A stretch of 64,000 bases of DNA from Marsupella aquatica (GCA_973895155.1 OZ316898.1:14848330-14912329), one strand, 5' to 3'. Positions 11,882 through 51,449 are shown, numbered from the stretch's first letter. Program-made: numbers and translations. Notes: generated from the letters alone by a model not told the origin.

Positions 11882-12004
11882 TTGGATCGGGTGAAGGTTA
11901 ACTGTATTGAGAAAGCAGGTTTCAAACAAGGGCACCTGCTCTGTCTTGGATTGGGTGAATGTTAACTGTATTGAGAAAGTAGGTTTAAAACAAGGCACCT
12001 GCTC
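11882..12004. repeat. Two-copy tandem duplication, ~66 bp
   Basis: TTGGATYGGGTGAAKGTTAACTGTATTGAGAAAG...GGCACCTGCTC occurs twice. Confidence 0.8.
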
Positions 12005-12899
12005 AGACATGCCTGGGGCAAGCCGACGTCTATTTTTTTCTGGCACATGATATTTATTCTCATAGCCAGGTTTGGCATAGGCAGGTAGCCAGAAGCTACT
12101 TTGGGCTAATCAATGTTAATCTACATTATTTAGCCTTTCTCCTGCACCCTTAACCCTCTAACTCTCTCTAGGAGAATCTCTAATCTGTAGGGGAAAAGTA
12201 CTCCTTATTAAGTCGAGAAATTTGGGCAATCAGGTCCCAAAACTATGGAAAATCCTACTTGGGACCAGAATAGTTACAAAGCAATTGTTTCACATAGGGA
12301 CATGGTCGGGCATGCGGGTAATGATATGAGAGTGACAAATGCTCAATAACTGGGTTGATGGCTCTAAATGATGAAACTCTGCAACAAAAGTTGAAACGAG
12401 AAGTGTAGTCCATGAAAGTTTTCTCCATCACTAGTCCAATGCCCATGCCTTGCACAGATGACTTGAAAGCAAGGCAAAGAAATGATATCAAAGGGAGCAA
12501 TTACTGTTATCCCTTCCATCATACACTTTCTTGACCAATTTGAGCATAGAAGCCACTCATAAGGGAGTGATGTGGACTCTTAAAATAATAAGGTTGTCCA
12601 ACATGAGCTGGATGGAAATCACAAAATTCTGAAAACCCATAGAAAAACCACACTACAAAAGTTTAACATATATAAACATTATTTTGCTGGAATCTCATTT
12701 CAGTTGCAAAACTACATTTGGGCATTTTGGACAACTTTGGATGCAATGGAGACTTGTTTTCATGGATTTCAGTTTTTTTTTTTCTAGGCAAAATTAGCCA
12801 AGAAAGTATTAGCTCATAATACTGGAAAATAATGCAAAGAAAAAGGAAGGCTTGGGTTTTAAATTCCTCAAACTACAGAAATAGCTCAACTAAGGGCAA

Positions 12900-16732: not shown

Positions 16733-17473
<741 letters not shown>

Positions 17474-17499
17474 TCACGACTCGGCCACCCGGGAGACCG

Positions 17500-17870
17500 T
17501 TTTGCTTCGGCCGCGACCACCGAATGTCCGAATCGCCCCTCCTGCGACAGTCAGTCGCTACAGCGCTCCCGTTCGCCTAGTAGAACGGAATCAACTTCGG
17601 GACTCACTCTCTGGTCTTCAAACTTCAGCTGAACTCCGCGAGAAAGAAAAGGTCGAGAGTGCAGAAATAGAAATCCTTCCGAGAAACAAACTAGGCCACG
17701 ACTGCGAGCTAGCTTGCAACAACCCGTAGTCCTACCGTAGTACCCACAGCAAGAATTGGGTCAATTTTTCAAGGGTGAAGTGTGCTGCGAACTGGTTACG
17801 TGAGATTGGATGAAAGAAAGAGTCGGAATTGGATGGATGCAGAGGAGAGATGAAAACGTCTATATGAAGG
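17500..17870 (-). pseudogene. Decayed TIR domain
   Basis: Ordered TIR motifs at canonical spacing: IDVFIS...SDSF (in ORF 17732-18016), [14 protein letters not shown] (~58 codons later), KLIPFY*ANGSAV (~30 codons later), then QEGRFGHS. Frameshifts and stops lie between them. Confidence 0.6.
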
Positions 17871-20800
17871 CGGGGGGGCGGCCGCGTCACGTGCACGGGA
17901 CAACCCGCTCCAGAAAGAAGACGGCTTCCAAGTTCCAACTCCTCTGTAGATCTCGATTCGCGAAGCTCCAGGTGAAGAAGGTCTTCAGTCAGCCCCAGAG
18001 ACGCGTCGTCCTTCACGAGCTTCTTCCGGACGAGATTTGTTGTGAAAGTGAGTGCAGTAAAGTAGATGTGGCTCCACGCCTCGATCGATGAAGCTCCGTG
18101 ACTAATAAATACGATCGAACGGGGAATACCGCACGTGACTCGGTGAACCTCATCTGCCCCTTCCCTACAATATAATTATACTGCTTAATGGGGTTTCTTT
18201 CGGCTGCATAACGCCTGCCGTAAGATCATTCTGATGACACTCTGATTAGTGATTACGCAGCCCATTGAGGATCTCAGCCATCAATGCGTGGGATGGACGA
18301 CGCCTATAGAACAACTTACTAACACTCTGGAATGTTCTTCAATTATTTTATGAAACCCATTATAACCTGCCTTCGTCGAGACGACCACGGGTACTCGTGT
18401 CAGGACATGGCACAAAACAGTGGGACGGTCATCTTCCTTGGCAGAAACAGGATATCACTTGTCTGCGCCAAAAAAATTCGGATCCCAACTGAAATTCACA
18501 ATTTTTTCTAAAATATTATTATAGTGTTTTCTCAGAAACAGAAACACTCAATAGAAAAAACCCTGGCTACCTGCTACCTGCAAGCCATTCTTCCATTTTT
18601 TCCAGCATAGTCTTCATTTTTTGCACTTTCTGTAAGTGCAAACAGGCCCAAAAAACTTTCGAAAAGTATACATGCACCCTCGTCAGCTACATTGACCAAT
18701 AAGTGCATGGCATTTTTCGGTACAGAATAAAATGAATTTATGGGGTAAGGAATCATATTTAGGCCTGGGATGGACAATTTAGGGTGGAGTCACTGGAATG
18801 TTCACTGGAGGGACCACTGCATACACAGGGACTCTGGCTCTTATCATGAGTGTACAATTCCCCATTAGAAGCAGTGCATACCTTCATCAAACGGTCATTA
18901 TCCCCAAAACAAAACCTGGTGAATCCAGGTTATTAAAACTAGTCAATAATGTTTTTAGGAAAATAAAAAATATGCAGTGCTTCACAAACTTGGTGGAGAG
19001 TGGTGGTTTAATAAAGTAGACCTTCTTCCCAAAAATGTGCACTTAGACAGATGACTTCAGAAGACAAGGGTACCGCCCAGTGTTTTTGTTAGTGGCAAAA
19101 TTTTGCTTGATTCCACCTCCCCAAAATTCTTTCGCCACTTTGGCAAAAATTTGCTACTATTTTTCTGGCTCATTAGCCAGTGTTTCAGCTAATCCCAGGT
19201 CCCATTAGTCAGAATCTAAGGGTCAGCCTTAAATCTAGGGAGATCTGACGTTCAGGAAAATAATTGAATAATGAATCTTCTGAGCATCTTCTCTCTCAAA
19301 CACTTTACATTCGCCACTCTAACTAAAAAATGAAATCCTTAAAAAATAAGCTGGTACTGCGGTCATGTTGTTTAGCATACATAGCATACAGACAAGCCAC
19401 AAAACTATAGCGACGGCCACCGTTCTTAGCAGAAACAGTGTCACGCTTGTCTGCGCCACAAATCTTATATTTACTGTGGATCCACCGCTCCGAAGTACAC
19501 AAACAGGTCCTCACTGAATTCTAGATTGCAGAAAGCGGGGAGACCGCGTCTGAGACAAGGAGAAGAGGTGTCATCTTGTCTAGAGAAAGTAGTAGTTTGT
19601 CATGGTGGCCGAGCGGTCCGTAAGTTGGCCCCTTCTGCGTTGACAAGGCAATGTCGCGGTGACACGAGTACAGTACCGTACCGTACCCGTCGATCTGATG
19701 ATCGCACGACTTGGGAGGTGTCTGCAGCCGACAGCCGAAAGGCCCATTGGCCGAGAGGTTTTCCCTGCAGCTCTACCCAAGACTGACTACTACAGGAGTA
19801 AATTAAATGCCTATTCGATCGTGGCCGGGAGACCCGGAAGCTGCAAGGGGGACAAGCACGCCCTCGGAACTGGAAAGAGTACCATAGTTGAGCTGCAGCT
19901 ATTATTTACCTTATCCAATTTTGTTCTAGACATCTCGAATGTTTCATAGTCAATTTTATATTATTATTATATCACACTACAAAAAAACGAAAACAAGAAA
20001 ACCAGGATCCGGGAGGAGGGCGATCTATAGAAAGTTAGGCTTCAGAAGGGAGTAGATCCAGCAGGGCAACTCAAAGACGGTGTTCCATGTTTTTTTCATG
20101 AGTAGCTGCTCGAATATTGGGCCAACTTAATCGGGAGATATTTGGCTTGAGACGAGTCACAATACCGGACAGCAGGTGAGCTCAACATCTGTCAACAAAT
20201 ATTGGAATTCTGATATATTTTGGGAGGGTGTGAACAATTCTTGAAAGGTGCCAATGTATTCTCACAGACTGATTTTTGGTACACAAGTTTGTGCATTGAC
20301 TTTTCTAGTTAGTGGCAATCATCTTTTTTGGGCTAACCACACATTTCAATCCTCAACCTGGCCAAGAGCATTTTGATATTCTCTTGTAAGTACCTCATTA
20401 TATAAGGACAAGCCTTATGTCAGTGCGTTGCACTATGCAAGGAGGCCGGTCCATAGAGAGTCCGGCCGGGGAATTTATGGGGTAGCCGGAACCACATATG
20501 TGTCAGGGTTACACATTTTTTTCATCAATGGTCAAGGGCTCATCAGCTCATCAAATCCAACAACTGTGTATCTTTTTCACATCTTTTCCACCCAGGAATT
20601 TTTTGTTTTGAGACAAAAGACTAAAAAAGATTAAATCACTTATTATAATTCTAGATAATGTCATGTATTTTTCCAAAAATTAGACAAATAAAAAATAGTG
20701 TCCTTATCCCAACCGCAATGACATGGATGCTGGTTAGAGATTCGATCCATGCAACATTTGCGTCCATCTATAAATCGCAAGTGCGCCACTTCATGAAACA

Positions 20801-23003: not shown

Positions 23004-26000
23004 TTGCGGCCTGTCATGTCTACGTTGAGAGTGTTGGCGCGGGGCAAGCGCCCAGCCCCACCCCACACTTCTCCCCCGTCCTCCCCTCCCCCTCGTGGCC
23101 GTCTTCGTGTTTGCTCTTCTTCACTGGATCTCTCTCATCTTCGTGATGATCCCATGCCCGATGCTCTGCCAGTCCCCCCCGTCTACTGCCCACCCCATCG
23201 TCGCCCTGGCTCCTCTCCCCACCCCATTCCCCCTCCACCCATTCATCATCCTCCTCCGGCCTCCTCGTCCACATCTGTTCCACCCCCACCTCCTGTCCAG
23301 TCTTTCCCTGCTCCCTCCCCGGACGAGCGTCCCCTGCATACTTGTCCTGACTGTGGATGGGTTGGCATCTCCCTCCCTCATCATCGCGGGCGGGGCCGGT
23401 GCCATCGTCGCCAGCAAGCACAATCCCAGCCTCAGCCCCCTATTGACCCGGTTAGCTCTGCCCCTCCCTCCTTGGAGGCTCCCGAGCAGGCATGGAGTTG
23501 GGTTCGCACTCTAGACCCCCTTCCAGCCTACCATCCAGGGTACATTAGACCTCGCCTTTATAACCACATTCCTCTGGCGCTGCGCCCTATAGTTCGGTCC
23601 TCCTTGTTGCAACTCATGCAGCTTATCTTGGCGCATCCTATGGAGGTCTCCTACTGGTCTTTACTGATGCTTTTTCCACAGTGGACTCTTACCCTCCCTA
23701 GTCATGGTGGTCGTGTGGGTCACCGTGAGACTGCCTCTCGTATCCATCGTTTTTTGCGGGGAGATTGGGAGCAGCTTCAGGAAGAGTACTTTCTTCGCGC
23801 CCGGTCTTTTACCGCCCGTGCTTTGTCTGACCCAGCTCGCCACTCTCATCCCCCTGAGCATAGACGTCTTCGTCGCTCTTGTCGTTTAGCCCAGGCTGGT
23901 GAATATCGTCGGGCTGTCCAGGCCCTTTCTCCCACCACACCAGCCCCCCCTGGCGAGGTCACCTCGTTGGCCCTTCAGGATCTCCATCCGCAGCCCCATG
24001 ATCAGCTCCCTTTGTTTGTCGAGGATTTTGAGCCTGAGGAGGATCTTCAGTTTAGTAGGGACCACTTCACCTATGCCTTCCTCCATGCCCCGCGTTGTTC
24101 TGCTGGTGGCCCCTCCGGCTATGTCTTTGAGCATTTTCGTGATTTATTCCCCCCTGAGGATCCTCAGTTTGGTTTTCCAGTTTTCTTCTCCTTTTGCCAG
24201 TGTATTGCAGCCGGTCGTTTGCCTCCTCCCGTCTCTCGGCTCTTGAGTGCTTCTCGTTTATTGGCCATGGCTAAGTCTTCACCGGGTGTTCGGCCAATTG
24301 CTATTGGGGAGGTTTTTCTTCGTCTTGTGTCTCGCACACTTTCCTCACAGTTTCGCTCTGCACTATCGGATCATATCTCTCCACATCAGTTTGCAGTTGG
24401 CGTTCCTGGCGGTTGTGAGACGGTTATTGCGGGTATTCGAGCTACATTGGACCTCCACCCTGATTGGGTTGTCCTCCAGGTTGATGTCTCTAACGCTTTT
24501 AATACGGTTTCTCGGGCAGCCATTTTTCGTGCTTTGAGGGCGGCGGATCCAGACATCCAGTCCCTGATCCCCTTTGTCCGTTGTTTTTATGGACTCGAGG
24601 CCCCACTCTTCTATAGTTATCACTCCTCTACAGGTGTGTATACCACTCTTTCCTCTGCAGAAGGTACACGTCAGGGTGACCCTTTGGGTGGGCCTCTTTT
24701 TGCCATTGCCCATTTTACAACTTTACGGGAAGCTGCCATGGCCCACCCCCAGTGTATCTTCCCCTCCCTTTCAGATGACACCCACATCATTGGTCCTCCT
24801 GCCGCGGTTACTTCTGCCCTCGCCACTCTTTCCACCCATTTGATGGGCCTCGGTTTACGAGTTCAGCCTGTGAAGAGTCGTGCATGGAGTCCAGCTGGGT
24901 TACCCTCTGATCTTGTGCTTCCCCCAGGGTTCTTACGTCCAACCGATGGTCTTCGGGTCCTTGGCTCCCCAGTCGGTACCGCCTCCTTTTGCTCATCTTT
25001 CATCGCTGACTCTATACAGGCTGCCTTAGCCCATACTCCTATGCTCCCTAAGTTAGCAGATTCTCAGGCAGCATTTGGGATGTTGTTGAGGTGCATCCAC
25101 CCTCGTGCGTCTTATCTGGCTAGGACGCATCCCCCTACCGAGGATCTTTGTCTCCACCTTCGAGCATTTGATGTCTCCATTCATCAAACCCTGGCCTCTC
25201 TTTTAGGTCCGGGTACGTTGCTCTCATCTCCTTGGCTTCATCGACAACTCAATCTTCCTATTTCGCAGGGTGGTTTTGGGCTTACTTCCATTGAGAGCCT
25301 TGCACCTTTGGCCTTTTTGGGTGCATGGGCGGCCGCCTTCTCGTTGTTGGCCGATCGTTTTCTTATTGAGGATCGCCCTTTTTTACTTTCATCTCTCATG
25401 GAGGTAGAGGAGGGTTCCCTCCCGTTTCAGGTTCATTTGCACACAGCGCGGTCCTCATTACCAGATCCCGTTCGCGCCGCGTTACCTTCTTTCCAGGAGT
25501 TTTTATCCTTGGATCCCGTTCGTCTTCAGGCAGACCTCGCTGGGCGTATGCACACTTTCACCCTTTCCAGCATCCTCTCCGAGGCACCTGACACGGACCG
25601 AGCTTGGATTCTTTCTTCCGGAGGGAAGGGCGCAGGTGGATGGCTTCAGGCCAATCCAGTCATTCCTCATTTGCGGATGTCTTCAACGGAGTTCTCCACA
25701 GCCATGCGTCTTCGTCTGGGGCTGCCCCACCCACTTCTTGCAGGTTTACCTCCTTCTTGCACTTGTGGGAAGCCTTGTGATGCCACAGGCGTCCATCTTC
25801 TTCGGTGCAGTTTGGGAGGTGAAACCATTATTGTTCACGACGCTGTGCGAGATGCGACTGCTCAGGTTCTCTCTGGCTCTTTGGTATGCGTGCGGCGGGA
25901 GGTGGTACTCGAGTTACCTGGTCCTCCATCACAGCGGTTACGGGTGGATCTTACCATGGTCCGTGAGGGTCAACGTACTTTGGCAGATGTTGTGGTGGCA

Positions 26001-35360: not shown

Positions 35361-36950
35361 CATAAAAATACAAGTTGCTTGAGTAAAGAACTAGGGTTCA
35401 CCCGTTTCTCTCAAAGCTGCTATATGGTGAATGCACATTTCATAAAAATACAAGTTGCTTGAGTAAAGAACTAGGGTTCACCTGTTTCTCTCAAAGCTAT
35501 ATGGTGAATGCACATTTCAGATTTTGTCTTATTCAGATTTTTGTGTCATGTATTTTCATTTCAATCTGCCTTATCAAGGGGCAGCCTTTATATTCTATAC
35601 ATTTTCAATTAATTTTTAGACCCCTTTAGTTTTAGGTATTCTAGAGTGTTTTGAACTTATTTTGGCAGCCCCCTTTCACAATATGTGTTTTCTTAGAGAT
35701 CAAACCAAAGGCTCCACCACCACGAGTGAGAGAAATGATGCTGAATAACATGAATGCATAGCCTTTTAAGTTCTCCTCATGTTTTTCTTTCCTAGGTTTA
35801 TGGTTTTTATTGAAAGTAGTGTCATTCATAAGGCACCTTGAGTTAAGTGCACACATCGTAGCATTGTTTGACTGTACCTTTTCTTGGTCACTGTGCTTTT
35901 CTTGGTAGACACTTTACTTATATAACAACACTTCTATGCTCTCATATTTTATTTACTTTCATATCACTACAAGACAAAAAATAAATTTTGTTCTAGGATG
36001 AGCATGCTATATCAAGAAGACATAAATGAACTTAAATCACGAGTTTCAGAATAAAGTACCTATAAAATTCATTTCACATCCAATATAATCATGTATACAT
36101 AAGAGCATATCATATTTTTAAGAATTTACCAGTATGATATATACAAAAGAGGATATCATATTTTGAGAATTGACTAGTAAAAGTGTCACCTCGAGCATCT
36201 CACTGAGGAGGTGCTGATGCTGGTGGCCCTTAACAAAGTCGGCTGCGGCTTTCTGGTGCTAAAGAGCTCCTGATACTTGAACGCAATATGCAAGGTGCTG
36301 ATGCTGGTGGCCCTTAACAAAGACTGCTGCGGCTTTCTGGTGCTAAAGAGCTCCTGATACTTGAATGCAATATGCTTATGAACCTATATGGTGAAAGCAT
36401 TTTTCAGATTTTGTCTTATTCAAAATTTGTGTTCAGTATTTTGATTTTAATGTGCCTTAACTCCGTGAATCATTTGTATTAATTTGATTTTGAACTAACT
36501 TTTGGACCCCTTTTAATTTTAGTGAACTTAGAGTAAATTGAATGTATTTGACTCTCATAAATGTTTGATCTTTCCTTTGCAATCACTCCTTAGTGAATTA
36601 TCTTTTTTCTCATGAGAGTAGTAATGAGTTTGAACAATGTGCACATTTGGTGTACTTCCTTCCTGGTTTACTTTACAAATTTTATGGTTTTAATTGAGTT
36701 GATTAGCATTACCTACAAGCAAGTGAAAAATCTGTACTTTATGTGCAGAAATGTTTAGTACCTTTGTACTTTCTTCGCATGTGTACTATGTCACTCACTC
36801 TTAATGAACAAATATTAATTTTTTGACATATATTTTACATGTACGTTCTTTTATATTAAAATAAATAAAATGAATTACATATCTCTACAAAACAAAAAAA
36901 AGTCATGTTCCAGGATGAACATGCTATATATGAGGAATAAAATTGATTAT
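35361..36950. repeat. Local duplications: 80-bp and 85-bp tandem pairs and a diverged ~550-bp direct repeat
   Basis: 35361-35518 is a two-copy tandem and 36209-36375 is a two-copy tandem. ~35497-36030 resembles ~36385-36940 (TATATGGTGAA...TTTCAGATTTTGTCTTATTCA...AGGATGARCATGCTATAT). Confidence 0.7.
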
Positions 36951-37257: not shown

Positions 37258-38675
37258 GTGTCACCTGGTTGAGATCTTATGAACAAAATCCCCATAATCA
37301 ACAGTTGGGGAAAACCTCTACTTCATGTATAATTGTAACATTGCAAGATATGATGCCTTGACAAATAAGAGCTTCAATTTTATTTGTAGGAGCTAATATT
37401 TCACACAATGCTCTGTGTTAGGAATTGACTTGAGTTCCCAGCTATAGTTAGTCTGACATTACTAAGGTGAGTTAGCCATTGATTATAAGAGTATAAGCTT
37501 CAATAAGGGGCGAGGGTGGGGACTTTTTATGCTCCCTCCTTGCTAAGGAGGGCGAGGCCCAAAGTGCATTAATCAAGGGGAGAGGGGCAGCGTAAGCACT
37601 CCCTTCTCTGGGGAGCTTTTAATGGGGGGAGGCCAAAGCCCTATGCAGGGACGGTGAGTCAAGAATACCAGGTGAGGGCCTGCACGAGGCCCTATGAAGA
37701 ATTAAAGAGGGGGGGGGGAACTCGGGGGCCTCAGTATACAGAGACCCCCATATCACGCTCGACGTTTTGGACCCTTGCACCCCTAACTTATTAAGTAAAA
37801 AAAAATTCCCCTTCCCTATCATACTTATAAGAATTCCAAATCCTAACATTTTGACCCCTAAAAATAGTTAAGTAAAGTTCTCTTGTGAATTAAACACCCC
37901 TTAGTAAGAAAAGAAAAGTTCATTCAAGTGCGCACCTTATTCCGGTTTTCGCCAAGCTTATTTGAACCCTAACGTGGTCCTTTGGCATCCATATCTCATG
38001 AAAAACTGATAGTATATAGTGTTGATGCTTCCACTAAGAATACCAATTCTAGTAGAAGCTTCAACAATATACAATATGAGTTATTCATATTTGCAATCTG
38101 CTATGCTTGTCTCATGTTAAAGGTAGGTACACCAAAAGGGAATTGAGTCAAGAATCTGAATGGTGTGTGTACGTGGCAGAGGGGAATTGAACCCCTGATT
38201 GAGCAAGAAGCTCGAGTATCCAAATCTGCCACCCCCTAGCCTATTCCCCTAACCTATCCCCTGTACATACTAAAACCCCTACAATGACTGTTGATGCATG
38301 CAAATCATTCAACTCTAGACATGGTCTCCAAATAAGTATCCAAAGCTTGTTTATCAACTCGATCTAACACATACACTAAACCAATCCCTTGTTTCATGGT
38401 TAGAGTAACATTAGTCATCACCATCTCTATATCAATCCATTGTAAATCAGTTGTATCATAAGTGAATTCAACTTTGCTTGAGCTTGTTGGCTTATACCAA
38501 TTGAACAAGAACTGACAAATACTCCCTTCGTGTCCATGAGGAGATGTTGGTCTGTCAAGCAAATCAATAGCAGATCTCACTCTAGTCCATTGTCCCTTAA
38601 CTTTGTGTCTCATCATCATAATCCGACCAAGCCAAAATTCTTTCTTGCTTGCACTACTGGCTCTTGAATCCTAGA

Positions 38676-40392
38676 TGTCGTATAGCCAAAAGAACAAAAA
38701 GGAACACTTTTTACATAAAGACTCGGAATACGATCCCTTTAAGAACAGATTTGGAAAGAATTGAATGAATTTATCTCTCTGAGTAATCTAAAGCTCTCAG
38801 CACATAGATTTCTTGTTTCTCACTAAAAGATCAAATAAACAAAACACCAAAGTAAAATAAACTTCTGTCTTATGAGTCAAGAGAGAGTCAATTATGGTCT
38901 GAAAACTCTGATTAGCTATTGCCACTCCTTCAAAAAGGACTATGGTCTTAGAATAGACATAAAACAAGTCGCATAACTCACTAATTTCTCTCCTGACTAA
39001 ATAAAATTGCATGATAAGGAATTTCCAATTTGCTAAACAAGTATTGCTCTGGTTACAAATGTAATGATATGACTTAAGATGCCGGCAACATAGTTTGACA
39101 TCAGCGATACGCAATTCCGTCAAACACTAAATCATATTCCATAAACAAAGTAACGGTACTGAATACTCTGAGAACCAAACTTTACTTCTCACATATCAAA
39201 CAACAACTCTTGAATTAGCTAGCGAATCTTGACCCTTCAAGCAAGCCTAGCAGTGAATTCAATGTAAGTCACAGAAGTTTGTAACTGAATTCAAGTATCA
39301 AGAAATTTCTTGAATTCATAAATTCAAACATAAGTTTTACTTCTATACAAGACTTTTCTTGTTAAAATGGAAGGAGGGAAACTAACAGAAGTCTGATTGG
39401 AATTGTCCCCCCTCTTCCGAATGGAAAAAACATGAGGTTTTATAAGTAAAGGTTCCCTTAACTGAAAAGGCATGACTTTTCAAACCTCATATATCTAAAA
39501 GACAATCCTAAAAGAAATAAAGAAATGCATTGGAGACTTAGTGGACGCTTTGTAGAGCGTCGGTGCTTTCCGGTAAAACTAATAAACAGTGGTGTTAATC
39601 TAATTTTAACTTCTAAACTAAAAGTCAGAATGAGCTGAGACTTTTCTAGAGTACCCTACTACATATAATCTCTATGCTGGTAAAGTTTCAAACTTCTCTG
39701 AGGTCTCTAAGTGCCTCAAATAAATCGGTGAAAGTGGCACGGTGTTATAAAAGTGCGAAAATCAGAAATATTTCTAAGTGTCGGGAAGATAGTGGATGCT
39801 TCAGAAAGCGTCCAAACCCACAAAGGACTTTTGTGGACGCTTCAGAAAGCGTCGGCTGAATTTTGAGGTTTGGTCGCGGCGTCCGTCTTCCGGCCTTCAG
39901 GTGGGACGCTTCAGAAAGCGGCGAAGTCTGTCTTGGCGGACGCTTCAGAAAGCGTCGATTCTGCTTTGTCTTCGAACATGGTTGGACGCTTCACAAGGCG
40001 TCACTTCTCATGTGGACGCTTCAGAAAGCGTCTCATCAGACTTTGGGGTTAGCGGACGCTTCAGAAAGCGTCTTAAAGCGTCCGGTGTCTGGTTCAAATA
40101 GACGTTTCACGAAGTGTCTTCTGTTCCGTGGTATCGGTGAAGGACGGCTCAAAAAGCGTCGTGGTTAAGGGGGTCGCATCTGGTTGGCAGCAACCATGGA
40201 CGCCTCAGCTGTCTTGAGGTTTATTGGCTTTGTAACTTGGGACGCTTCAGAAAGCGTCCTTAGTTAGACTAAGTGAGTTAACCGCCAAATGGAAAGTAGA
40301 CGCTTCAGAAAGCGTCGTTTTTGCTCAAAAAGTTTGAAACGATTCAGATTTTTCTCTTATGGTCGTGTTTCAGCAAAAGTCTCCTTTCCACA
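38676..40392. mobile_element. Solo LTR (1717 bp) inserted in the transposase ORF
   Basis: TGTCG...CCACA termini, flanked by a perfect 5-bp TSD CTAGA (38671-38675 and 40393-40397). Confidence 0.9.
39540..40320. repeat. Interspersed 19-bp palindromic repeats GGACGCTTCAGAAAGCGTC inside the solo LTR
   Basis: About 13 perfect or degenerate copies. Arms GACGCTT/AAGCGTC surround a CAGA loop. Spacers are mostly ~10-50 bp and unique. Confidence 0.9.
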
Positions 40393-43300
40393 CTAGATTT
40401 ACCTCTTCCCTTACCTTTCCCCTTCTTTGATCTTGTAGAAGGGCCTGCATCATTAGCACTTTCAAAAGCTACTCCACAATCACTCCCAACATCAACAAAA
40501 CAAGTCACAGTATTTGGATCACATGTTTTTCTCTTACCAAGATTATAGTATGCCACTTGCTTCACCCTTGTCAGCCTATCTTTAGACAAATGAGGATTGC
40601 CCACTAGTTGACTCACCAAAGTTGATTTGTAAATTGTTCTGCCCTCATAGGTAACTGTAGGCAAAACCTTCTTTTTTTCCTACACAAGGCTTTGAATAGA
40701 CTCTGTAAGCTCAGCCACAACAGAAGATAGAACATGACGAACCTCATGCCCCAAAGTATCTACCTCTATAGAATGAGGTTTTGGTATGTCTAACTCAGCC
40801 CCATCCTGCAAAACATCATTAGGAATGGTTAGCTCATCTGTCAACCATGCATCAATTTGATTTAGATCTTCCTCGGGATCTTCAAATTCATGAAACTCTC
40901 CTTCTAGACGAGGTCCAATTGGAGATTTGTGCTCTACATGCTCTTCAGAATCATCAGCAACAACTGCCTCTTCTATTATAGCTGAATCTGGCCATGTTTC
41001 AACTTCCACATCCCAAGGGTGAGTCCACCATCGCTTTCTTGTTACTGGAAGATCACTTCGGGGAAACATTTGTAACCTTCTAAGCAACTCTTTTGCTTCT
41101 TCAAATCCTTCTTTCAACGCTGCAACAACCAACTCATTAGATTGCACTTCAGAGTAATAAAAAAGATTAGGTGCTTCTTCACCTTCAAGTAAAGGATGAA
41201 GCTTGGCCCACACATGATCTTGCTTCTTATGAGAGCGAGCTACTTTTAAGCCCTCTGGTCCACATTCTAATCCAGCAAGACGATTCAACCCAATAGTACT
41301 ATCTAACAAAGAGCCAAAATCATAATTCCTCTCATGGCCACTCATTCCACCTACCTTGCTGAAAAAGATCTCACAACAATCAGAACCCAATTCATGAAAT
41401 GGAATACACAAGTGAGAAAACTTATCACGAAATGCACATACAAGCAACACAACAAATTGACAAGACATATTAACATTATGAAAAGCTTGGATTGAAATCA
41501 TATTTTTCTCTGTATGTGAAGCAACATTTCCACCAACAGCATGATCACCGTACCTCAACCACAACCTCCACAATCAAAAGAACCAAGATACTTTGCCTGC
41601 CAGCTTCACTCTGGTTCTCAGGTCATATCTTTGGGAGTAGAAAATGTCAATGTAATCTGCACAGACCTGTAGATACAACTCTATCCCCAAACTTTGCTCA
41701 TACAACAGATCAGTTCTTACATGCAAATCTGCTAAACAATCACGCACCTTTTTGGATGCTATTCTTTGGGGACCAACCCAATTTTGACGATCAGATCTGT
41801 TCACATCATCCCAGTTCAGTCCATGTTGATGAATTGCATAGCGATTATACACATTACAAACATGAAACAAAGAAGAATGTTGGTCTCCAAGTGCCATTAT
41901 TGAGGACACTCGATCTAGTGGGTTAATCAACTTTTTCCCATTGTGAGGCTAGTCTTGATCACCAAAACCGTACAGGTCCCCATTAGGCAATATGGCAACT
42001 GAATATGGCCATCCTTCCCACCCTACACAGAATCTAGGGTAAGAGCCATTTGCTCCTCTGTAGTCTTCTAGCATCAATTTCCTACGTCTTGCATCACCAT
42101 CACTAGCATGCCCAAGCAAAGGACCTACAGAGTCTCTGCAGTGCACATCCCAACATTCTTTTAATTGCACCCAATGCTCTCGAACCCATTTTGCCTTGAA
42201 CTTGTTACAGGTAGATATAGCATAGAGGGCCAACTTTGGCATTCCAACATGCAATGGATTGACAATGACAACTCTAGCATACATGCCCTTGTTATAATCC
42301 TCAAATGTATTTACAATCCTATTATAGCCATCCTCACCGTCACCTACAAGAATCTCCAATCCAAATTCACAGGTATGCTCATCCTTATGGCCACGGAAAC
42401 CAATCAGAGTGTCATACTTGGCCTCCCACCTGCATAGAGCCCAATGAAAAGTAACTCAGATATAAAGAATTAGTAAAACTATGTCATGTATCACAAATAA
42501 GCTTCAAATGCTATGATATGCAAACATACCTTGGGCTTTCCTTTATCCTAGTTTCATCCTCTGCAAGCATGATAGGTACATCGCCTTGAATTCCTAGCAT
42601 CTCCTTTGCAACAGACAAAATCCAAGCCACCTCCTTGAATGTTTCTGGTCTAATTCTAACACGAAATTGCACAAATTTTGCTCTATCTCTTTTCAATGTC
42701 TTAAGGCTTGGCCCAGCTAAATTTCTTGCAAAAACATGGGCCACCTGTCGGCCCCCATACTGAAACATAGCCTGAGCTATGGCTTTTGTTTTTTGACTGT
42801 AACAAATCCCCCTTGCACTTCTCTCCAAATTTCTACTTACATCCTTCAAAAAATCCCAAAGACCTTCTTTTCCACCAAATGCACCATTCCTATGACCATT
42901 GACAATATTTTTTAGAAAAAGTCTCAAATCTTTTCTGTCTGCAGCTACTCCTAACAGTTCCTGCAATTTTCTCTTCCTAGTACTAAGGGCACACACTTTC
43001 TGAGTCTGTTGTGCCAACAACCATCTCTCCTTTCTTCTCTTGACATTCAGACCATGCATCTGTGTGGTCAACTCTGGACGTGTCAAATAACGTGCATTCA
43101 AACCACCCTCTGTGCTTCTTCCCCCTCTCTTTGCTAAAGCCTCCATTTCCCTGTGCACCCGTCCATGAGAGTCACCTTCTAGTGTTATAGCATGACATCT
43201 ACTGCAAAATAGGTTCAGAAACCCTCCACCATACAAGGACAACCTACAGCAATGTTTATGCCTAAATAATCCTTCTATATGTACAATAGAATTGGTGACA

Positions 43301-44855
43301 GGATTGCAGACATCAACAGAGGCTGCAACATCTAAATCCCATACATGTCCTCCACGTTGATCATGCAAGATAACTTTCACAGCATATTTCACATTCTTCC
43401 ACTCTACAAATTCATCCCATATTCCCCAGTAGAGCAAACTTAAGCCCACATCAATGTCTATAGACCCACCTGTGCCAGAGCTACTGCTTGCATTGGAAGC
43501 ATCCTCCTTGAAGAATTTTAGAATTGAATTATGTGAAGGATGTTGATCCCTCTCGTCTGGCTTCCTTGGTCTGCCCCTCTTTCCAGATCTCAATGCAAGT
43601 TCAGTAGTATTCTCTCTGGCTTCAACTACATCCAGATGACCCCGACTGACCAAGTGTGTCCTCAGGTTGTGATCCAAAGTCCCTTTCTTACAAACCAAAT
43701 CCATGATTGCCCCACAAACTTTACAACGAACCTTATAAAGGAACCACTTGTTTGCATTATTGGTTGACCCAGGCACAGGGGGCACATGAAATAGGTCATC
43801 ACCACCTCCACACTCAACATTCAGATTTTGAACTATCTCTAAGCCAGTTGCTATGGCCCCCTCATAATCAAACTCAGGCTTCTGTGCAAGATCTGAGGGC
43901 TTCACCCCAGTCATAGCAATACCCCTTCTCTTGTAGTAATTGTCTTTGTGTTTAGCAAAGGTGAGGTGCTTAGTCTTATAATTGCTAAACAGATTAGCAA
44001 TTGACTTCTTATCTTGGGAATTGTCTGCCCTCCCATAGACCACTCTGCATTCAAGACACTCCAAATGGCCTCTCACATCCTGTCCTTCATCCCAAGTTTG
44101 AATTCTCCAATTATGAGCTTTATAACCATTCTTGTGAATCCACTTCTCTAGTCTTATATATTCATCATTCCAGACTTTCACAGCTGCCTGAGACATGAGA
44201 AGAGACTCAAAAGAAGCTCTCATAGGGGGAGCTTCTTGAAGCTGTTCACCCTGTGAAGAGTCCACTGCAACCGATTGGGTGACAGCAGGAGATACTGATG
44301 GAAACTGTGTTCTACCAGTCGGCAAGGATCCTATTTGTTCAATGACAGCAACTTTCCCATCCAATTCAGACAACTCAGTCATTTTCTCACTCTTGACCTT
44401 CATGCAACCAGGAAGCCTATAATCCCAAAAATCAAAATCAAAATCAACCAAATCAGGAATTTGACTTAAAAAATCAGCTAAAGTTTGTCCTTCTTTGAAG
44501 GCCAACACAGCTATAGGTTCTTCATCTTTCCCATCAGTGACCACATCCCTTTTTTTGTGAAGTAATTTTACAAACTGGGCAGTCATTTCAATCAATTTGT
44601 TCAAGTTAAAGCATCAAGGGTTCTAAATACAATCACAGTCACATAATGAACCTGCCATACAACACAATGGACAAAATAGTACAAAATGTATTAGAGATTA
44701 CTCCAAAATAGTTCAAAAAACCTTTTGATCACCAAATTTGATGACCAACACAAAAAACTTTTGTTCATCATTGTTCACATTAGAGTAGTGCAGTGAATAA
44801 GTTGCTTTGTACCAGGACTTGACCAAAGCAATTCTACCAAAATATTTCACAGCAT

Positions 44856-45522
44856 CTAAGAGGTATGAGGCTGCACAGGAACCAATTCACCCTCAGGTAT
44901 TGCATGCCTATGACAATAAATAAAATGCCACCCTTCCACATCCCAATGGTCCCTGCCCTTCACACACCTCTTGAGGTGTTTCACCCCCCCAGGTGTCTCA
45001 TCATGACACCAACTACGAGGGCACCTACGACACTATACAAAGTCCTTAATCCCATCTTTGTAGATTTTACAGTACTCACAAAAATGCCTTGGGCAAATTA
45101 GGTTGTTTGGACTTGCTGGATGAGACCTTTGAGGCAATGCCCCAACCATAAGGAGCACCCTTAGGCAGCCAGGGTGGTAACGGGAAAAGCAATCAGGGTG
45201 GGCACAGTGCAGCACAAGCGACTCCTTTGCTGTGGGATGCTCGAATCTACCAATGAGTCCACAAAGCAAAGCATCTAGCTTTGCCAGCAGAACACAATTG
45301 ACAAACCCAGGGTGCCCTCCAGTCATTGTTTTTAGGCAATGTGACAGGAGTGCAAACGGTTCCCTGCATACCTTCTCCACCAACAAAGTGAAAATGTTTG
45401 CTGCAGGGCCCATCACAAAATACCACATCATCTGTTTCATCACAAAAGAAACAACAAGGGGGATCCATGCGATGGTGCTCCTTATGGGAAAATATGTCAA
45501 TTTGTGGCAGATCAAAAGCCAT
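44856..45522 (-). pseudogene. EDM2/NSD-like tandem PHD-finger cluster
   Basis: CFFCDETDDVVFCDGPCSKHFH...C...WVCQLC...CF; a frameshift leads to HCAHPDCFSRYHPGCL...ICPRHFCEYCK...V*CRRCPRSW...HWDVEGWHFIYCHRHAIPEGELVPVQPH*. Cys/His spacing and the IYC..H.I....L.PV..H tail match EDM2 as recalled. Confidence 0.75.
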
Positions 45523-46597
45523 CTTTTCTTGCAGATAGTGATTTTACCTCTGCACAACAAATCCATTCACTCAGCATCCATTTTGCAGCCCTCAATAATC
45601 ATCCATTCAACAGCACTGTATTCATAGTTATTGGTGCAACTACAGATTGGGCATCTTGGACGTAAGCATAGTTACCTTGATTAGTTGATTGAGGTCTACT
45701 GCTTCCACAATCTTGGATCAAAACGTATATTGCTGAAGCTTCTGAGATGCTTGGAACACTACACCCTAGACCAATCCATCCTGCAAGAAGAGTTTAGAGC
45801 ATATTAACTTATCTGAAAGGTGACTGAACTGAAAGACTGAAATTGAGGCCAGGTTCATTCCTCATGGAAATTGATTTCTTGGTAGAGGACACACCTGAGC
45901 TTGTGGAGACTATACAGAGATAGGAAGAAAGGCATATAAAGATCAAGATCTAACATAAAACGTCGAATACAAACACACACAAAAGTATATTGTTCCAAAG
46001 AGAACAATAGAGAACTTGTACAGACAACAAACTATTGATTCAAGTTGAGGCTGTTTTAACTACCTCGAGAAGCTGCCCTCTTCTTGAACAAGCTGCAGCA
46101 CAACACAGTGCCAAATGAATTTCAGTCGAAGCCTCTACTTCTAAATTGATTTTCAGCAATCCATGGAATTCAGATTTTGTGTCCAAGCTCTAGTATGTTC
46201 AGAGTGTTAAGCCATCTTTCAATGAATCCTTGCAAGCAAGATAGCACATAAATCTGCTTGGAAAAGAGGGGCAGATACAACATGGTTTCTTTGACAGAGA
46301 ACTCTAGGCATTGCATTGCATGACTCATGCACTCAGCTGATCAGGGACAGAGTGAGGGACAGAGCAGCTGGCTTGACAAGGAGCAAGCTGGCTAACAAAT
46401 CAAGCTCTATATAAGCAAAGACATTGCGCAGCAATTGTCGTGGTTGTAGATAGAGCAGCAAGTTACTAACAAAGCAGCAAGCTACCAAGCGCCCCGCCAA
46501 GCAAGATCCCATTGTCATTTACAGAGCAGCACACAACAACGAAGGCAGTTCAAAAGCACCAAGAGAGAGATAGAAAACTCCACCAAAAGTAGTTGTG

Positions 46598-47335
46598 CCT
46601 GATCACAACTTTGCGCGATCACAGCCTCGCCCCCCCTTCACAGCTCCGCGTGCGATCACAGCCTTGCCCCTTCACAGCCTTTCCCGATCACAGCAGCCTG
46701 ATCAGAAACTGCCCCTTGAGTGCAGCAGCCTTATCAAAATATTACCCCTGATCACAGCTTTGCCTTGACCGCAGCAGCCTGATCAGACTGAAATTGTCTA
46801 ATCAAAAGTCACCCTCGACCACAGCAGCCTCGATTGCCCCTCGATTGCAGCAGCCTGATTAAATTGTGCAATGCCAGCTCGGGTGACAGCTTTGCTCAAT
46901 TACTATATAGCAGCCTGATCCAAAGAAGTTTGAGTGATGAAAGCTTTGCTTGATCTCTACAGCGCCTCCCGCAGCGCCTCCATTGCCTGATAAAATTTTG
47001 TCCCCCTGATCACAGCAGCATTGACAGCAGCTCGCACGATCAAATGTCGCCCCAGATCACAGCAGCCTCAACAGCAGCATGATGAAATGTCGCCCCTCCA
47101 ATCACAGCAGCTCGATCAATCCAAAGTGGCCGCCTCCATCACAACAGCTCCATTCAAAGTTGCCCCGGCCCGATCATAGTCAAGATCACAACAGCTCGAT
47201 CCTAAGTTGCCCTCCCCCCGATCGATCTCAGCCTTGCCCGATAGTGCCTTGCTCGTTCAAAGCAGCAATACAGGACCTCAATCACTCAGCATTTCAGCAG
47301 CACCTCAATCACTCGACATCGCAGCGCCTACAACA
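46598..47335. repeat. Degenerate minisatellite built on GATCACAGCAGCC
   Basis: Many variants of (T/C)GATCACAGCAGCCT at irregular 20-50-bp spacing. Confidence 0.7.
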
Positions 47336-48347
47336 TGCAGCTCCTTTGGAAAAGTATCGAGGCAGACCTTCGCGACTCACCCCTGCAAACGATCATTCCC
47401 AAACATTCCCGTAAACAGCCAGGGCAAACCATGGCCGATTGATCGGGAAGGATCGTGGCCGCCCTTTGTAACCCTAAATCGGGCCCCTCCACGGGGGCTG
47501 CAACTAACACAGATTGAATGGACCCGGGTGACCCAATGTATGGCCGCGCGATGTTTACCCAAACATCACTAACTTGGATTGATGGCCCTAAGTAGCCCTC
47601 GACCTGCTACCTTAACCCTTGCCCTTAACTTCCCTCCTCACCGACTAACTCCCGCTCACACCAACAATTTGAATTTTGCCCTCAAATATATTGGCCATAA
47701 AATACACAGGCACTAAACTGGCTGGAGTTTATGAAAGGAGGTGCCACATGGACCAATTAAAAATTGACACGTGTACCCCATATATTCTATTGGCTAATAT
47801 GCCCTATCTGAAAGTTACAACTTATATTGAAGAACTGGGTTTTTTAGCAACCCTACTATACTTCTAAGTTGCCGGATTTATTTTTTAACCCCTATTGTTC
47901 TTCCTCAAAACTTCTTAAGTATTCTGCAAAATTGAATTAAAAAACCCTATACTTATTCGCGCGTGATGGGTCGGAAGTTATTAAGTGAGGACCCCGGGGG
48001 GGAATACATTTGTCTCCCTTCTCTTTGGCCCAAGGCCCTAAGCAAGGGCTCAATTGGGACTAAAGGGGCATGTAAGGCACGTAGGAGCAGGAAGCTCTAA
48101 GCGTCCTTTAATTTTTCCAGGAAAAGGCAACACATGGCGCAAGGGCAGCAAGGCAGCCAAATGGTGTAAGGAAATAAGAAGGGAATTCAGGCAACAGTTT
48201 GCCCTCGGCCTTTCTGGTGTTCACAATTGTTTTTGTAAACACTTTTTTGTTTCTTTTATTTCACGCAAGTTTGTATTTTTGTTTGAACAGGTGTTGACTC
48301 CCGTGCCGTTTGCTGTAAATTCAAATATACTTTGATTCCCTAGAGGA

Positions 48348-48475
48348 GAGATATATCAACCTGGAGGACAACCCAATTAGGGTGGAGGTCCAAGGTAGCG
48401 TGAATACCCACAATAACTGTCTCACAATTGCCAAAAACATGCACCCACTGCAAACTGACGTGGAGAGAGATGATA
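48348..48475 (-). mobile_element. Short fragment of the CRE-clade RT
   Basis: Translates GNCETVIVGIHATLDLHPNWVVLQVDIS, matching copy 1 GGCETVIAGIRATLDLHPDWVVLQVDVS (~24370-24492). Confidence 0.9.
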
Positions 48476-49072
48476 CCTTGTTGATGGATTATGGGAGAGA
48501 TGGAGTTGTCAATATACATTGGGCCGGCTATCAATGCCGTCCTAATTGAAGTGATATTGGTATTTTCTGAAATTTTGGATTAAATTTTTCTCTGGTCGAA
48601 GTTGGGTCATGCATTATCATGTCAGGTTGCTAGTGGATCATCAGGTCAAAGACCAGTCCATCATAATTTAGCATGAAAACATGTGAAACCAATCAATGTG
48701 CAAAGATCTATCTAACAATTCAAAGGGCAGTTGAAAACCAAGATAAGGGATTCTGATCTAAGATGAAACCTCTCTACCAACTCTCAGGCACGTACAGCTC
48801 CAGTGAAGACGGGCACAATGATACTGGGTACTTATGAGCAAAGCTTGGGCATTCATGCTAGTGATGCCATATATGAAAGTCTGGTCATGTAAATGTTTCA
48901 ATCAAACCAGCATCATTGACAAGAAACAGCCTGAAAAAATATAGTCACAGATGTTATGTCTACTCATCAAAGTATCAGTCAAACAAAAGACAATAGAGCC
49001 AATTACTCTCTAGAATAACAACCTGGACAGCTTCTAGTAAGACCATAAGATACGGCACTGGTATATTAAGCA

Positions 49073-49417
49073 TGTTAGGATTTACTCTTAGGTCTAGAGT
49101 AACGACTGTACCGTAGTTAAGGCTAACCTTAGTCGCAGACTTGGTTAGGTTAGTCATGCTGTGCACACTCTATACCCAAGCGGTGTTTGCTTGGAGAGGG
49201 AGAACTCAGGCTCATTGTTACGGAGCTAGGTGAGAGATAGAGAGAGCTTGCGTTGTGGATGCTTGGTATGGCCGATCGACCTAGAGTGTAGTAAAGCTCA
49301 TGTGTGTTCCCGTGGACGTAGGCTCATGTGGAGGTGAACCACGTATTTCTTTGTGTTGACTATTGTGCGTTGGATGGTTCATGGGCTTGCCGTTGCGATT
49401 GTTGTCTATGCTCAACA
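49073..49417 (+). mobile_element. Solo LTR, 345 bp (strand relative to the sister copy only)
   Basis: TGTTAGG...CTCAACA termini with a perfect TSD AAGCA (49068-49072 and 49418-49422). Confidence 0.88.
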
Positions 49418-50028
49418 AAGCATGCCTGTCCATGCATCAAGACGTACATAATTAGACCATCATCATATTGGATGAACGTGGCAAACAAAATCAGAGTCTT
49501 TGTTCATGGGGTCCGGTAAGTGCACATCAAAATATGTCATACATGGTGTATGACATCGTTCCATATCATGATAAATGCCGTTATTTTCTTTAAATCAGTG
49601 AGTGCACATTGTATATTACCACATTTTGATATGTGATTATCAGCAGGGTTTGTTCATCCCCTATCCCTGCCCCTGCCCCATTGCTGAGCTGGAGCTACAC
49701 ACCCTGCCACACATTCTCCCCTAGCTTGCCACCTGAACCTCCACCCCAGGTCCACACAAGCCCCCTAGTGCTTAATACCATAATTCTTGTCCAATCACAG
49801 AGAGAGAGAGAGAGACTGAGACTCTTCATTGCTCAAACATGTTCCACCTCTAGTTATATTAAAGGAGTGTCCAAGACTTCTCCCCTTTTCACATTTCTCT
49901 CCCCTACTATAAGACTTTGCTTCACAATTTTAGGTTCACCAGGTTTTTGTCATGGCTAGTGCCTCTTTAAGGGTTTTCCTTGGGTTTTGAAGTAGGCCTC
50001 GATGGCGCAAGTAGACACAACTATGTTA

Positions 50029-50385
50029 TGTTGAGCAAAGATGATATTCACAACGACAAGCACATGATCATCCAACACAGGGCATGCACAAATAATCAAC
50101 ACAAAGCGATACATGGTTCCTCTCAACTGAGGCTACATCCATGAGAACAAACAAGAAACTACACTCCAGGCCCATTGGCCATACCAAGTGTTTGCAATAC
50201 AAGTTCTTGCTATCTCTCAATTGGCTCGGTTGGGGCTTAGTTACATTGAGCATGAGAGCCCCCTATCCAAGCAAACACTGTTTGGGGATATAGTGTGCAA
50301 CATGACTAACCTAACAAAGTCCGTGACTAAGGTTAGCATTAAAATATGGTTATAGTCCTCTAGACTTAATAGTAAATGCCTAACA
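50029..50385 (-). mobile_element. Solo LTR of the same family, opposite orientation
   Basis: Its reverse complement aligns with 49073-49417 (GCTAACCTTAGTC...GTTAGGTTAGTCATG...GTGTTTGCTTGGA). TG...CA ends. TSD TGTTA/TATTA (4/5). Confidence 0.82.
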
Positions 50386-51449
50386 TATTATTGCAAATAC
50401 AAACCTTTGAAATGGAAATTAATTGCAAAAGCCATGCCCATTGTTAATATGCTTGGATGGACTCTTTAAACCTGAATAGATGGCATCCAAAAGGGCATCC
50501 AAACATTGAATTATTTACTTGCATAACATGGTCTACATTAGAAAAATTACATTGATGTGTAAATTGAAATATAACTATTCACAGTGATTCATCATCTTTA
50601 GGCTTGATTTCTATGTAATTGCTCTACACCTCAAGACCCACTTTGCTTGCTAGTAAGTTAGAGTATTGAATCCCTTTCCAGCAAACTAATTTTGAGTTAA
50701 TTTTATTAGACTAGCCTAAGTGCCCATTATTTGAACATATACAAAGATGAGATATTCAAGCGCGCCATGCCATCCCGCTTGCCATATGCAGACACTCACC
50801 CTGCCCCCATCCCCAATTCTACTTGTACCCCAGACTTCAGTTACGCCTAGAGTGTTGGTCTGGAGGCTTCAGTCTAGACCATAGACCCTGATGAGTACTT
50901 TTTGATTGCGAGTGGATAGTTAGATTTGGAAATGGTATAATTGCCAGAAGCAAGACAGGGCAAGATGTCTGTGACTGGTCTGAAGGTAATTGTAACTTGC
51001 AAGCAAACAGGACAATTCCTGTTATGGGAAAAAAATTTCCTGCTGGCAAGCTGGGTCCCTAGCTAGCTAAAACCTGGCTGTTGAAACTCAATTATGGGAC
51101 TGAATTTGGTGCCTCCCCACTGCAAGGAGGTACTTTCTTGAAGTGTGTGTATGGATTGCTTTGAGATTTTTGAGATTATTTTTGAGTTCCATGAATTTTG
51201 GGGGTGTCAGACACTTCCACTCCCAATGGAAGGACGTAGGTTCCATGGGGACCGGGTTCATCTAATGGGTTCCAGTCCATCCAATTGCGTGCTTCATCCC
51301 AATTGCGTGCTTCACTGGTCCCTCAACTTCATAAAAGCACCCTTGCTCACCATTATAAATTATTCACAACATACCGTGTTACCGCAAAAAGGATCTTTTG
51401 AAAAGAACAATGCCCCGACAAAACCCCACAGAAGAAAATTCCGTTACTT

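Follow-up and report, generated by a model that had tools for sequence, protein, structure and literature searches.

Does a DNA transposon of liverworts carry a chromatin reader of its own, or do a transposase relic and a cluster of PHD fingers lie side by side by chance? This question is raised by a locus in a stretch of 64,000 nt from Marsupella aquatica (GCA_973895155.1 OZ316898.1:14848330-14912329, one strand), hereafter the window, in which an original prediction had placed a P-element-like transposon carrying an EDM2-type PHD module. Our analysis indicates that the segment 37721-47998 (10,278 bp, or ~6.6 kb once two insertions private to this copy are subtracted) is probably a decayed copy of a cut-and-paste DNA transposon that has two genes, that is present in many copies in leafy-liverwort genomes and that encodes a transposase with a P element fold together with its own triple-PHD gene. 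Both coding features, the PHD open reading frame (ORF) and the transposase gene, lie on the minus strand. The window copy is itself inactive and dead, its lesions comprising four in-frame stops (three in the transposase and one in the PHD ORF) and one frameshift.

For the copy survey, contigs from four sequencing runs (X1-X4), covering two organisms, were compared with positions 42300-48299 at 85-100% likeness. Each run contributed between 554 and 2,014 contigs; exact matches to the window were present in runs X1 and X2, and the copies found in the runs are numerous and diverged from the window copy. The multi-copy read signal was even over the transposase and the PHD ORF, approximated the single-copy level across 45.5-47.7 kb, and peaked at 47.7-48.1 kb, with many contigs stopping near 47977. 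Given that a contig of run X1 joins position 45790 directly to 47735, this signal profile implies that the 1944-bp segment 45791-47734 is missing from at least one other copy, and that the element reaches ~48.0 kb.

The reads thus gave the first clue to the ends, which were located by motif search and cross-genus comparison. An outer motif, CGGGGKCCTCA, has just two occurrences in the window, 37723-37733 (+) and 47986-47996 (-), against a chance expectation of 0.02; the pattern being derived from its own two sites, the comparison between genera is the weightier test. Together with an inner motif, TCACG[C/T][G/T]CGA, it is found in inverted orientation at 37721-37762 and 47958-47998. The 3' terminal inverted repeat and subterminal region (37721-37771, plus strand), which is conserved with a Calypogeia end, displays the outer motif as CTCGGGGGCCTCA and the inner motif as TATCACGCTCGA at 37751-37762, while the 5' subterminal region and terminal inverted repeat (47735-47998, minus strand), where the multi-copy signal is highest, displays the outer motif as CCCGGGGTCCTCA (reverse complement), the inner motif at 47958-47969 and a 22-mer at 47933-47954. 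The 5' subterminal region is unlike the 3' one, and both are conserved across genera. In a four-way alignment, the left end of the window element matched the end at position 16410 of contig L001 from Calypogeia fissa (reverse complement) in 41 of the first 51 nt, and the right end matched the L001 end at 19584, with 73% column identity over the first ~300 nt. The 22-mer was identical to L001 19628-19649 (chance expectation 0.00), and in L001 the sequence CTCGGGGGTCTCACT forms a perfect inverted pair of 15 nt (16396-16410 and 19584-19598). Within the window, a 42-nt inverted match (26/42 identical) was the unique best. Local alignments of upstream against reverse-complemented downstream sequence, performed for the window and for L001-L004, did not rise above shuffles. 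On the strength of the motifs and of their conservation, we take the ends to be imperfect terminal inverted repeats of ~45 nt, with termini at 37721 and 47998. The two 12-mers (37751 and 47968) previously put forward as weak candidate ends are real repeats, but they correspond to the inner motif of this longer terminal repeat and not to the termini. A 26-nt inverted repeat (38054/45718) was also tried as a terminus and rejected, as multi-copy contigs run through 45743.

The absence of a target-site duplication, as reported in the original prediction, was not borne out. The sequence GGGGGGAA flanks the element, its plus-strand occurrences being limited to 37713-37720, where it adjoins the terminal motif, and 47997-48004, where it overlaps the homology-defined terminus by 2 nt. 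Read strictly, with the terminus at 47998, this candidate duplication is 6 bp long (GGGGAA, the part that is certain), and it reaches 8 bp with the right terminus set two bases further in. P elements generate an 8-bp target-site duplication (PMC7776569), a length with which the flanking duplication, as read here, would be compatible, although a sequence of such low complexity is no proof of it.

Further in from the left end, a 27-nt block in the 3' untranslated region (38177-38203, plus strand) is present as a single copy in the window and conserved with Calypogeia. Its core, AGAGGGGAATTGAA, is found in four copies in L001 (14234-14409 and 16114-16127), three of them at 81-nt spacing, and the block may represent a transposase binding site. 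The conserved 3' block was also considered as tRNA-like and rejected, ARAGORN finding none. As a separate observation on L001, a GC-rich stretch of ~1.7 kb between AGAGGGGAATTGAA copies resembles a nested insertion. In the same contig, two ends of this family, at 16410 (3'-type) and at 19584 (5'-type), face apart across 3.2 kb (16411-19583) holding a copia-like polymerase fragment, and neither a PHD nor a transposase is seen in the first 1.9 kb of the copy that starts at 19584.

The transposase gene itself extends on the minus strand from its ATG at 44586 to 38305, and is broken by three in-frame stops (41949-51, 41574-76, and 40680-82) and one 1.7-kb insertion. Exon 1 (42526-44586, minus strand), an ORF with homologues 53-67% identical, contains two Cx2C...H...H zinc-finger-like motifs, a helical region and the first catalytic Asp, carried by AEDETRIK (42541-42564). 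It is followed on its 3' side by a short minus-strand intron of approximate bounds and splice sites (42441-42525), where the frame resumes after ...CTCTATGCAG and the homology to P0114, a full-length homologue of 1005 residues, spans the gap. From exon 2 onward (40386-42440, minus strand), the gene displays, in order, the second catalytic D within ASDGDARRRK (42078-42107), the DxxH..K motif as D*PHNGKK around 41949 (interrupted by the in-frame TAG), the helical insertion domain, the catalytic E region GSDCCEIFFSKVGG (41346-41387) and the start of a C-terminal barrel. A copy-specific insertion of 1715 bp (38671-40385) splits this C-terminal domain at a point where the Calypogeia and Riccia homologues are continuous, and the second half of the barrel occupies the last part of the gene (38305-38670, minus strand, stop at 38305-38307; 59% identity by tblastn to L001 13821-14129). 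The window pieces are collinear with P0114 and with two other full-length homologues, P0131 and P0138, the matches to P0114 ranging from E 1e-14 to 1e-33. All the transposase motifs claimed earlier are present, and the description of a spliced, lightly decayed DDE transposase relic holds for motifs, spacing and decay, but not for the end of the gene, as the frame runs on to 38305, farther than had been proposed.

To which superfamily does this enzyme belong? The window pieces were searched singly, and a natural full-length homologue was folded for structure. A profile search of 1.8 billion representative proteins returned 385 relatives at E<=1e-3, 34 of them at E<=1e-30; the full set includes many Riccia sorocarpa proteins, one protein from a coral (Desmophyllum pertusum), and proteins from metagenome or run assemblies. 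The angiosperm framing given to the locus at the outset was off, since the nearest relatives are liverwort sequences (Calypogeia and Riccia). An AlphaFold model of P0114, built from a 96-sequence family alignment, reached a mean pLDDT (predicted local distance difference test) of 80.9, with a core above 95. When this model was searched with Foldseek against the PDB, two entries of the Drosophila P element transposase came out best (E 2e-11 to 4e-11; 2.1e-11 for 6p5a_A), the next fold being Transib at E 7.5e-3. VIA-align superposed residues 132-640 of the model on residues 133-565 of 6p5a_A with a Z score of 24.7 and a root-mean-square deviation of 4.7 over 407/442 residues, whereas the Z scores for Transib, RAG1 and Hermes were 13.0, ~11 and 7.6, respectively. 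The P element match takes in the helix-turn-helix, the split RNase H-like DDE domain and the helical insertion domain. In the family alignment (P0114 numbering), D249 and D369 do not vary, most members have E606, and all three are kept in the window. Taken together, these comparisons clearly point to a P element fold for the transposase.

No such agreement was obtained at the sequence level. Pfam recognized no family in any window transposase piece or in 10 long homologues, even at E 10, and PDB sequence searches with a window piece, the family profile and P0114 gave no match; the profile models by which the P superfamily is defined in Pfam (Tnp_P_element, THAP9-like and TNP-like) accordingly do not include this family. 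Neither did Pfam detect a THAP domain in the transposase, which has the two other Cx2C...H...H motifs instead. THAP domains are confined to animals (PMC7776569), and a transposase devoid of them fits that distribution. The earlier designation as P-like is therefore sustained by fold (Foldseek and VIA-align) and DDE order, but not by the Pfam, PDB sequence or THAP searches, all of which failed; 'P-like', as used here, rests on the fold, the DDE order and a possible 8-bp duplication, and not on sequence similarity. It is on these grounds that the strongest competing explanation can be built, namely that the transposase comes from a superfamily of its own, so far without a name, or from Kolobok, and shares the P fold by deep common descent without being a member of the P superfamily. 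To our knowledge, Kolobok has no solved structure. The failure to match P/THAP9 models even weakly, the empty PDB sequence searches and the missing THAP domain would all be expected under this explanation, as would a C-terminal BAH-like barrel of a kind not described for P, and a duplication that is not firmly 8 bp. Set against it are the 407 of 442 P chain residues aligned, helix-turn-helix and insertion domain included, the 11 Z units by which P exceeds the next fold, the possible 8-bp reading of the duplication, and the language-model neighbours of the transposase, which fall into clusters where some members carry TNP-like_RNaseH_C, TNP-like_GBD or THAP9_C. On balance, we regard a separate superfamily as unlikely, though it is the alternative to be taken most seriously, and retain the P-fold designation.

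The second gene of the element is a minus-strand ORF that opens with an ATG at 45522 and closes with a terminal stop at 44858-44856 (feature bounds 44856-45522), encoding in ~221 codons three PHD-type zinc fingers: PHD1 (45522-45250), PHD2 (45263-45036) and the PHD3 tail (45032-44859). The count of one stop and one frameshift given earlier for its decay is correct: an extra base (+1) is inserted near 45263, between PHD1 and PHD2, and an in-frame stop lies at 45035-45033. As the extra base at 45263 is missing from most other copies, the frameshift is private to the window copy. In Pfam, PF22908 (PHD_NSD) scored 26.5 bits with window PHD2 and 40.5 bits with its Calypogeia counterpart (cut-off 23.9), while PHD-1st_NSD reached 19.4 bits on window PHD1, under its own cut-off. 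The zinc ligands are conserved between the window and Calypogeia, and the last PHD unit ends in C-x2-H in both (...YCHRH and ...YCNHH, respectively). A C4HC2H last unit, in which the final Cys is replaced by His, has been described for EDM2/NSD1-type proteins (PMC3776765). The nearest language-model cluster was a streptophyte set of 142-residue proteins with PHD_NSD and PHDvar_NSD. A homologue search with the 177-residue PHD ORF gave no match, probably since half of the ORF is out of frame, and a PDB sequence search with the PHD found no EDM2 relative. Judged from these signatures, the module is of NSD/EDM2 type at the family level, and to that extent the proposed EDM2 assignment stands; none of EDM2's other regions is present, however, the ELP domain and the proline-rich region being absent from the ~221-codon ORF. 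Such an ORF, with conserved start and stop and no other domain-bearing ORF, denotes a PHD-only protein and not an EDM2 orthologue. Between the window and Calypogeia, the ratio of nonsynonymous to synonymous substitution rates (dN/dS) was 0.25 for PHD1, 0.51 for PHD3, and 0.09-0.23 for the transposase pieces, figures that are rough, as dS is saturated; they indicate that the PHD is under purifying selection and has been kept by the sub-lineage.

That this PHD module is part of the element, and no piece of a host gene, follows from its position inside the ends, from the multi-copy signal that it shares with the transposase, and from its linkage to the transposase in another genus. In C. fissa L001, PHD1-3 (8335-9021), whose ORF is broken there too, immediately precede the transposase (9301-14129). 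The PHD and transposase ORFs each open with a Met-Ala that is conserved between the window and Calypogeia, and the PHD stop follows ...PVQxHxx in both (PVQPHTS* in the window, PVQEHST* in Calypogeia). The adjacency on one strand that had been noted in the window is confirmed, with a gap that measures ~270 bp up to the ATG at 44586 instead of ~250 bp. This spacer (44587-44855, minus strand) is poorly conserved among copies: contigs of diverged copies bridge PHD3 and the transposase start (e.g., X4 record 28, at 44509-44921), while other contigs align just to both spacer flanks (joint 44661-44855). Physical linkage of the two genes, proposed initially from the window, is thus seen in Calypogeia and in many diverged copies from sequencing runs of the window's own species, but it does not extend to distant relatives. 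No PHD was found within several kb upstream of the transposase at two Riccia loci (37-45% identical) or at the metagenome locus L004 (30-48% identical), whose transposases begin at the corresponding N-terminal position; PHD fingers are likewise missing from the non-plant homologues, and from all 155 family proteins collected; and a scan of metagenome contigs for PHD relatives yielded 92 pattern matches, of which none was confirmed. As distant relatives are devoid of it, the PHD was gained by one sub-lineage and is not a family-wide trait. Between the element ends, the ORF and domain scan revealed no further domain-bearing ORF beyond the PHD and the transposase (no BRCT, F-box or Cys-rich ORF), which makes this a two-gene family.

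The original prediction had likewise proposed a two-gene transposon, and the conserved start and stop of the PHD favour a separate upstream ORF over a spliced fusion. The PHD fingers could nonetheless form the N-terminal exons of a longer transposase, with splicing removing the stop along with the 270-bp spacer to give one fusion protein: the two ORFs lie close together on the same strand, and the spacer between them varies among copies as an intron would. We consider this improbable, given that protein conservation reaches a stop codon placed identically in the window and in Calypogeia, that both ORFs open with the conserved Met-Ala, that the transposases of Riccia and L004 have no PHD ahead of their homologous N-terminus, and that the collected family proteins lack one altogether (0/155).

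Far less probable still is that the two genes were domesticated by the host from a transposon and do not make up a mobile element, for which it may be said that the distant relative L004 looks uninterrupted and is met again, 99.9% identical, in several metagenome samples; against it, the Marsupella genome holds many diverged copies of the family, and the window copy has inverted-repeat ends, a flanking duplication, four in-frame stops and a frameshift. That the PHD cluster is a broken-off part of an EDM2-like host gene which came to lie by chance beside a transposase relic, a refuting case named from the outset, is suggested by adjacency alone and is effectively refuted, since the PHD shares the transposase's multi-copy signal, lies between the inverted repeats and recurs in the same order and spacing in Calypogeia, with no other part of EDM2 nearby.

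Along with the sequence-level failures described above, several points weigh against the reading of the locus as a two-gene, P-like transposon with a chromatin reader. (i) The fold evidence comes from the homologue P0114, which is 26-42% identical to the window pieces, and not from the window's own broken gene; (ii) that the two genes give separate transcripts, and not a spliced fusion, is predicted from the DNA sequence; (iii) the target-site duplication is of low complexity, ambiguous in length (6-8 bp), and derived from one complete copy; (iv) the PHD-bearing copy of Calypogeia has no recognisable 5' end within 8.3 kb upstream, so that only the window offers a complete two-ended, two-gene element; and (v) a role of the PHD in targeting or anti-silencing is one that we infer. 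Even so weighed, a two-gene transposon with a P-fold transposase is the reading that we retain as probable.

The transposase itself may contribute a further chromatin-related part. Its C-terminal ~150 residues form a beta-barrel, the parts of which are found in the window at 38305-38670 and 40386-40664, on either side of the insertion. Modelled alone from the uninterrupted Calypogeia ORF (L001:13416-14129), the barrel reached a pLDDT of ~90. In a wide VIA search, ~14 of the top 18 rows were BAH domains (DNMT1 BAH1, EBS, ORC1b, ZMET2, AIPP3, ASI1, TNRC18, Rsc2, and PBRM1), but with Z scores of just 6.0-7.3, and Foldseek returned no match for the barrel model at E<=1e-3. The resemblance to BAH is accordingly suggestive, and the barrel may give the transposase a chromatin-binding part of its own, in addition to the PHD protein. 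The same domain is found in P0114 and in the coral homologue, and therefore predates the PHD gene; the BAH-like tail hints that chromatin reading is older in the transposase family than the capture of the PHD.

How such an element might have worked can be proposed by analogy. The small PHD protein of ~221 residues would bind histone H3 tails on the element's behalf, as PHD fingers do elsewhere. The product of the second gene is a transposase of ~1,300 residues, with N-terminal zinc fingers, a helix-turn-helix, a split RNase H (DDE) domain accommodating the helical insertion domain, and the BAH-like barrel at its end. As in the P element, its zinc fingers and helix-turn-helix would bind conserved subterminal motifs, the candidates being the 22-mer at the 5' end and the 27-nt block at 38177-38203, and its DDE site would cut and rejoin the DNA, a staggered cut in the target leading to reinsertion with a duplication of up to 8 bp. 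As to what the PHD protein would do for the element, keeping it transcribed or unsilenced in marked chromatin seems the likeliest role, at not quite an even chance; directing insertion towards a particular chromatin state, perhaps jointly with the BAH-like tail, ranks second and would be rather less expected. We lean to a general role in keeping the element expressed because the PHD protein is free-standing. More tentative is the combined proposal, which we would not expect to hold in full, that the triple-PHD protein and the BAH-like tail constitute a transposon-encoded two-part chromatin reader, which steers insertion or resists silencing, and that the PHD gene was acquired once in leafy liverworts.

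The PHD gene's 5' leader and promoter region (45523-45790, minus strand) extends up to the joint of the X1 contig, beyond which lies the 1944-bp segment missing from at least one other copy. In this segment, which showed near single-copy depth in X1 and X2, no domain-bearing ORF was found. It holds a degenerate repeat field (46596-47300) of 16-80 nt repeats built on GATCACAGCAGCC, single-copy in X1 and X2, with moderate repetition in X3 and X4. In the insertion at 38671-40385, the palindrome GACGCTTCAGAAAGCGTC recurs ~10 times at uneven intervals, with motifs at 39544-40325, and these resemble the binding sites found near the ends of non-autonomous DNA transposons; no inverted-repeat ends were seen on this insertion, and its excision as GT..AG would preserve the frame.

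Outside the element, an inverted repeat with arms of ~360 nt (49072-49423 and 50023-50386, 73% identical, ~600 nt apart) has the look of a foldback or of a miniature inverted-repeat transposable element, and 126 nt at 48349-48474 are 84% identical, in inverted orientation, to 24370-24491, in the retroelement region at 21.6-26.4 kb. To the left of the element are tandem duplications at 35361-35519 (80-nt units) and 36209-36375 (84-nt units), 95-96% identical, and the sequence 35494-35662 recurs at 36381-36549 with 75% identity.

Some features were also recorded on contigs of distant relatives. In L012, the contig of the non-plant homologue P0114, a perfect 16-nt inverted repeat, TGGGTAGGTATGCTCC, brackets the gene (81-96 and 5812-5827), and G/C-rich stretches farther out resemble the liverwort termini; no target-site duplication was found by eye for this L012 element. 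Contigs L004-L010, from seven metagenome samples, carry at 99.9% identity a distant and apparently uninterrupted transposase relative, which adjoins a dual-specificity phosphatase gene. L010 is devoid of 131 bp that are present in L004 (9764-9894), a gap that was considered as a spliced intron and rejected, having no GT..AG ends and a length that is not a multiple of 3.

Overall, the data describe a P-fold transposase family in land plants (liverworts), a coral, and metagenome eukaryotes that is invisible to current Pfam P/THAP9 models, from which it follows that P-like elements are probably under-annotated. The open-access literature that we searched describes neither a transposon-borne PHD gene of EDM2/NSD type nor P-fold elements in bryophytes. 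To this the window contributes termini conserved across genera, fold evidence, the polarity of PHD acquisition and a BAH-like tail, the particular value of its copy being that of a complete two-ended example which defines the anatomy of the family. The PHD-only gene retained by the sub-lineage offers a natural setting in which to study the contribution of a chromatin reader to a DNA transposon.

Among known systems, the closest are the P element and THAP9, followed by RAG1/RAG2 or ProtoRAG. With the Drosophila P element and THAP9, the liverwort family shares the helix-turn-helix, the split RNase H, the helical insertion domain and the D, D, E order, as well as imperfect terminal inverted repeats with internal motifs and a target duplication that could be 8 bp. 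In the fly enzyme, GTP is contacted by D528, K385, K400, V401, S409, F443, D444, and N447 (PMC7776569). The liverwort family differs in having other zinc fingers in place of THAP, in showing no similarity at the Pfam or sequence level, and in adding a BAH-like C-terminal barrel and a second (PHD) gene, whereas P has no accessory gene. The PHD gene, for its part, resembles Arabidopsis EDM2 and animal NSD1-3 in its PHD_NSD match, its tandem fingers and its final His zinc ligand, but is a stand-alone, multi-copy module of ~221 residues without EDM2's other regions.

Built-in chromatin readers are carried by chromoviruses, among others, and VANC of the VANDAL elements is an accessory anti-silencing gene. 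As in these cases, the liverwort element is a mobile element that encodes a module reading or manipulating host chromatin, for site choice or escape from silencing; in contrast to them, it is a DNA transposon that devotes a gene of its own to the reader, whose PHD fingers are of NSD/EDM2 type and which is known from sequence. In V(D)J recombination, the PHD of RAG2 couples cutting to chromatin marked by H3K4me3 (see also PMC4411706). The RAG1/RAG2 and ProtoRAG/Transib systems thus resemble the liverwort element in combining a DDE transposase that contains an insertion domain with a second gene for a PHD reader (RAG2), a likeness drawn from genes and models only; the liverwort transposase is nearer in fold to P (Z 24.7) than to Transib or RAG1 (11-13), and its accessory protein is a triple-PHD alone, with no kelch propeller. 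If the two-part reader proposed above is real, it would be the counterpart, in a plant DNA transposon, of the arrangement of RAG1 with the PHD of RAG2.

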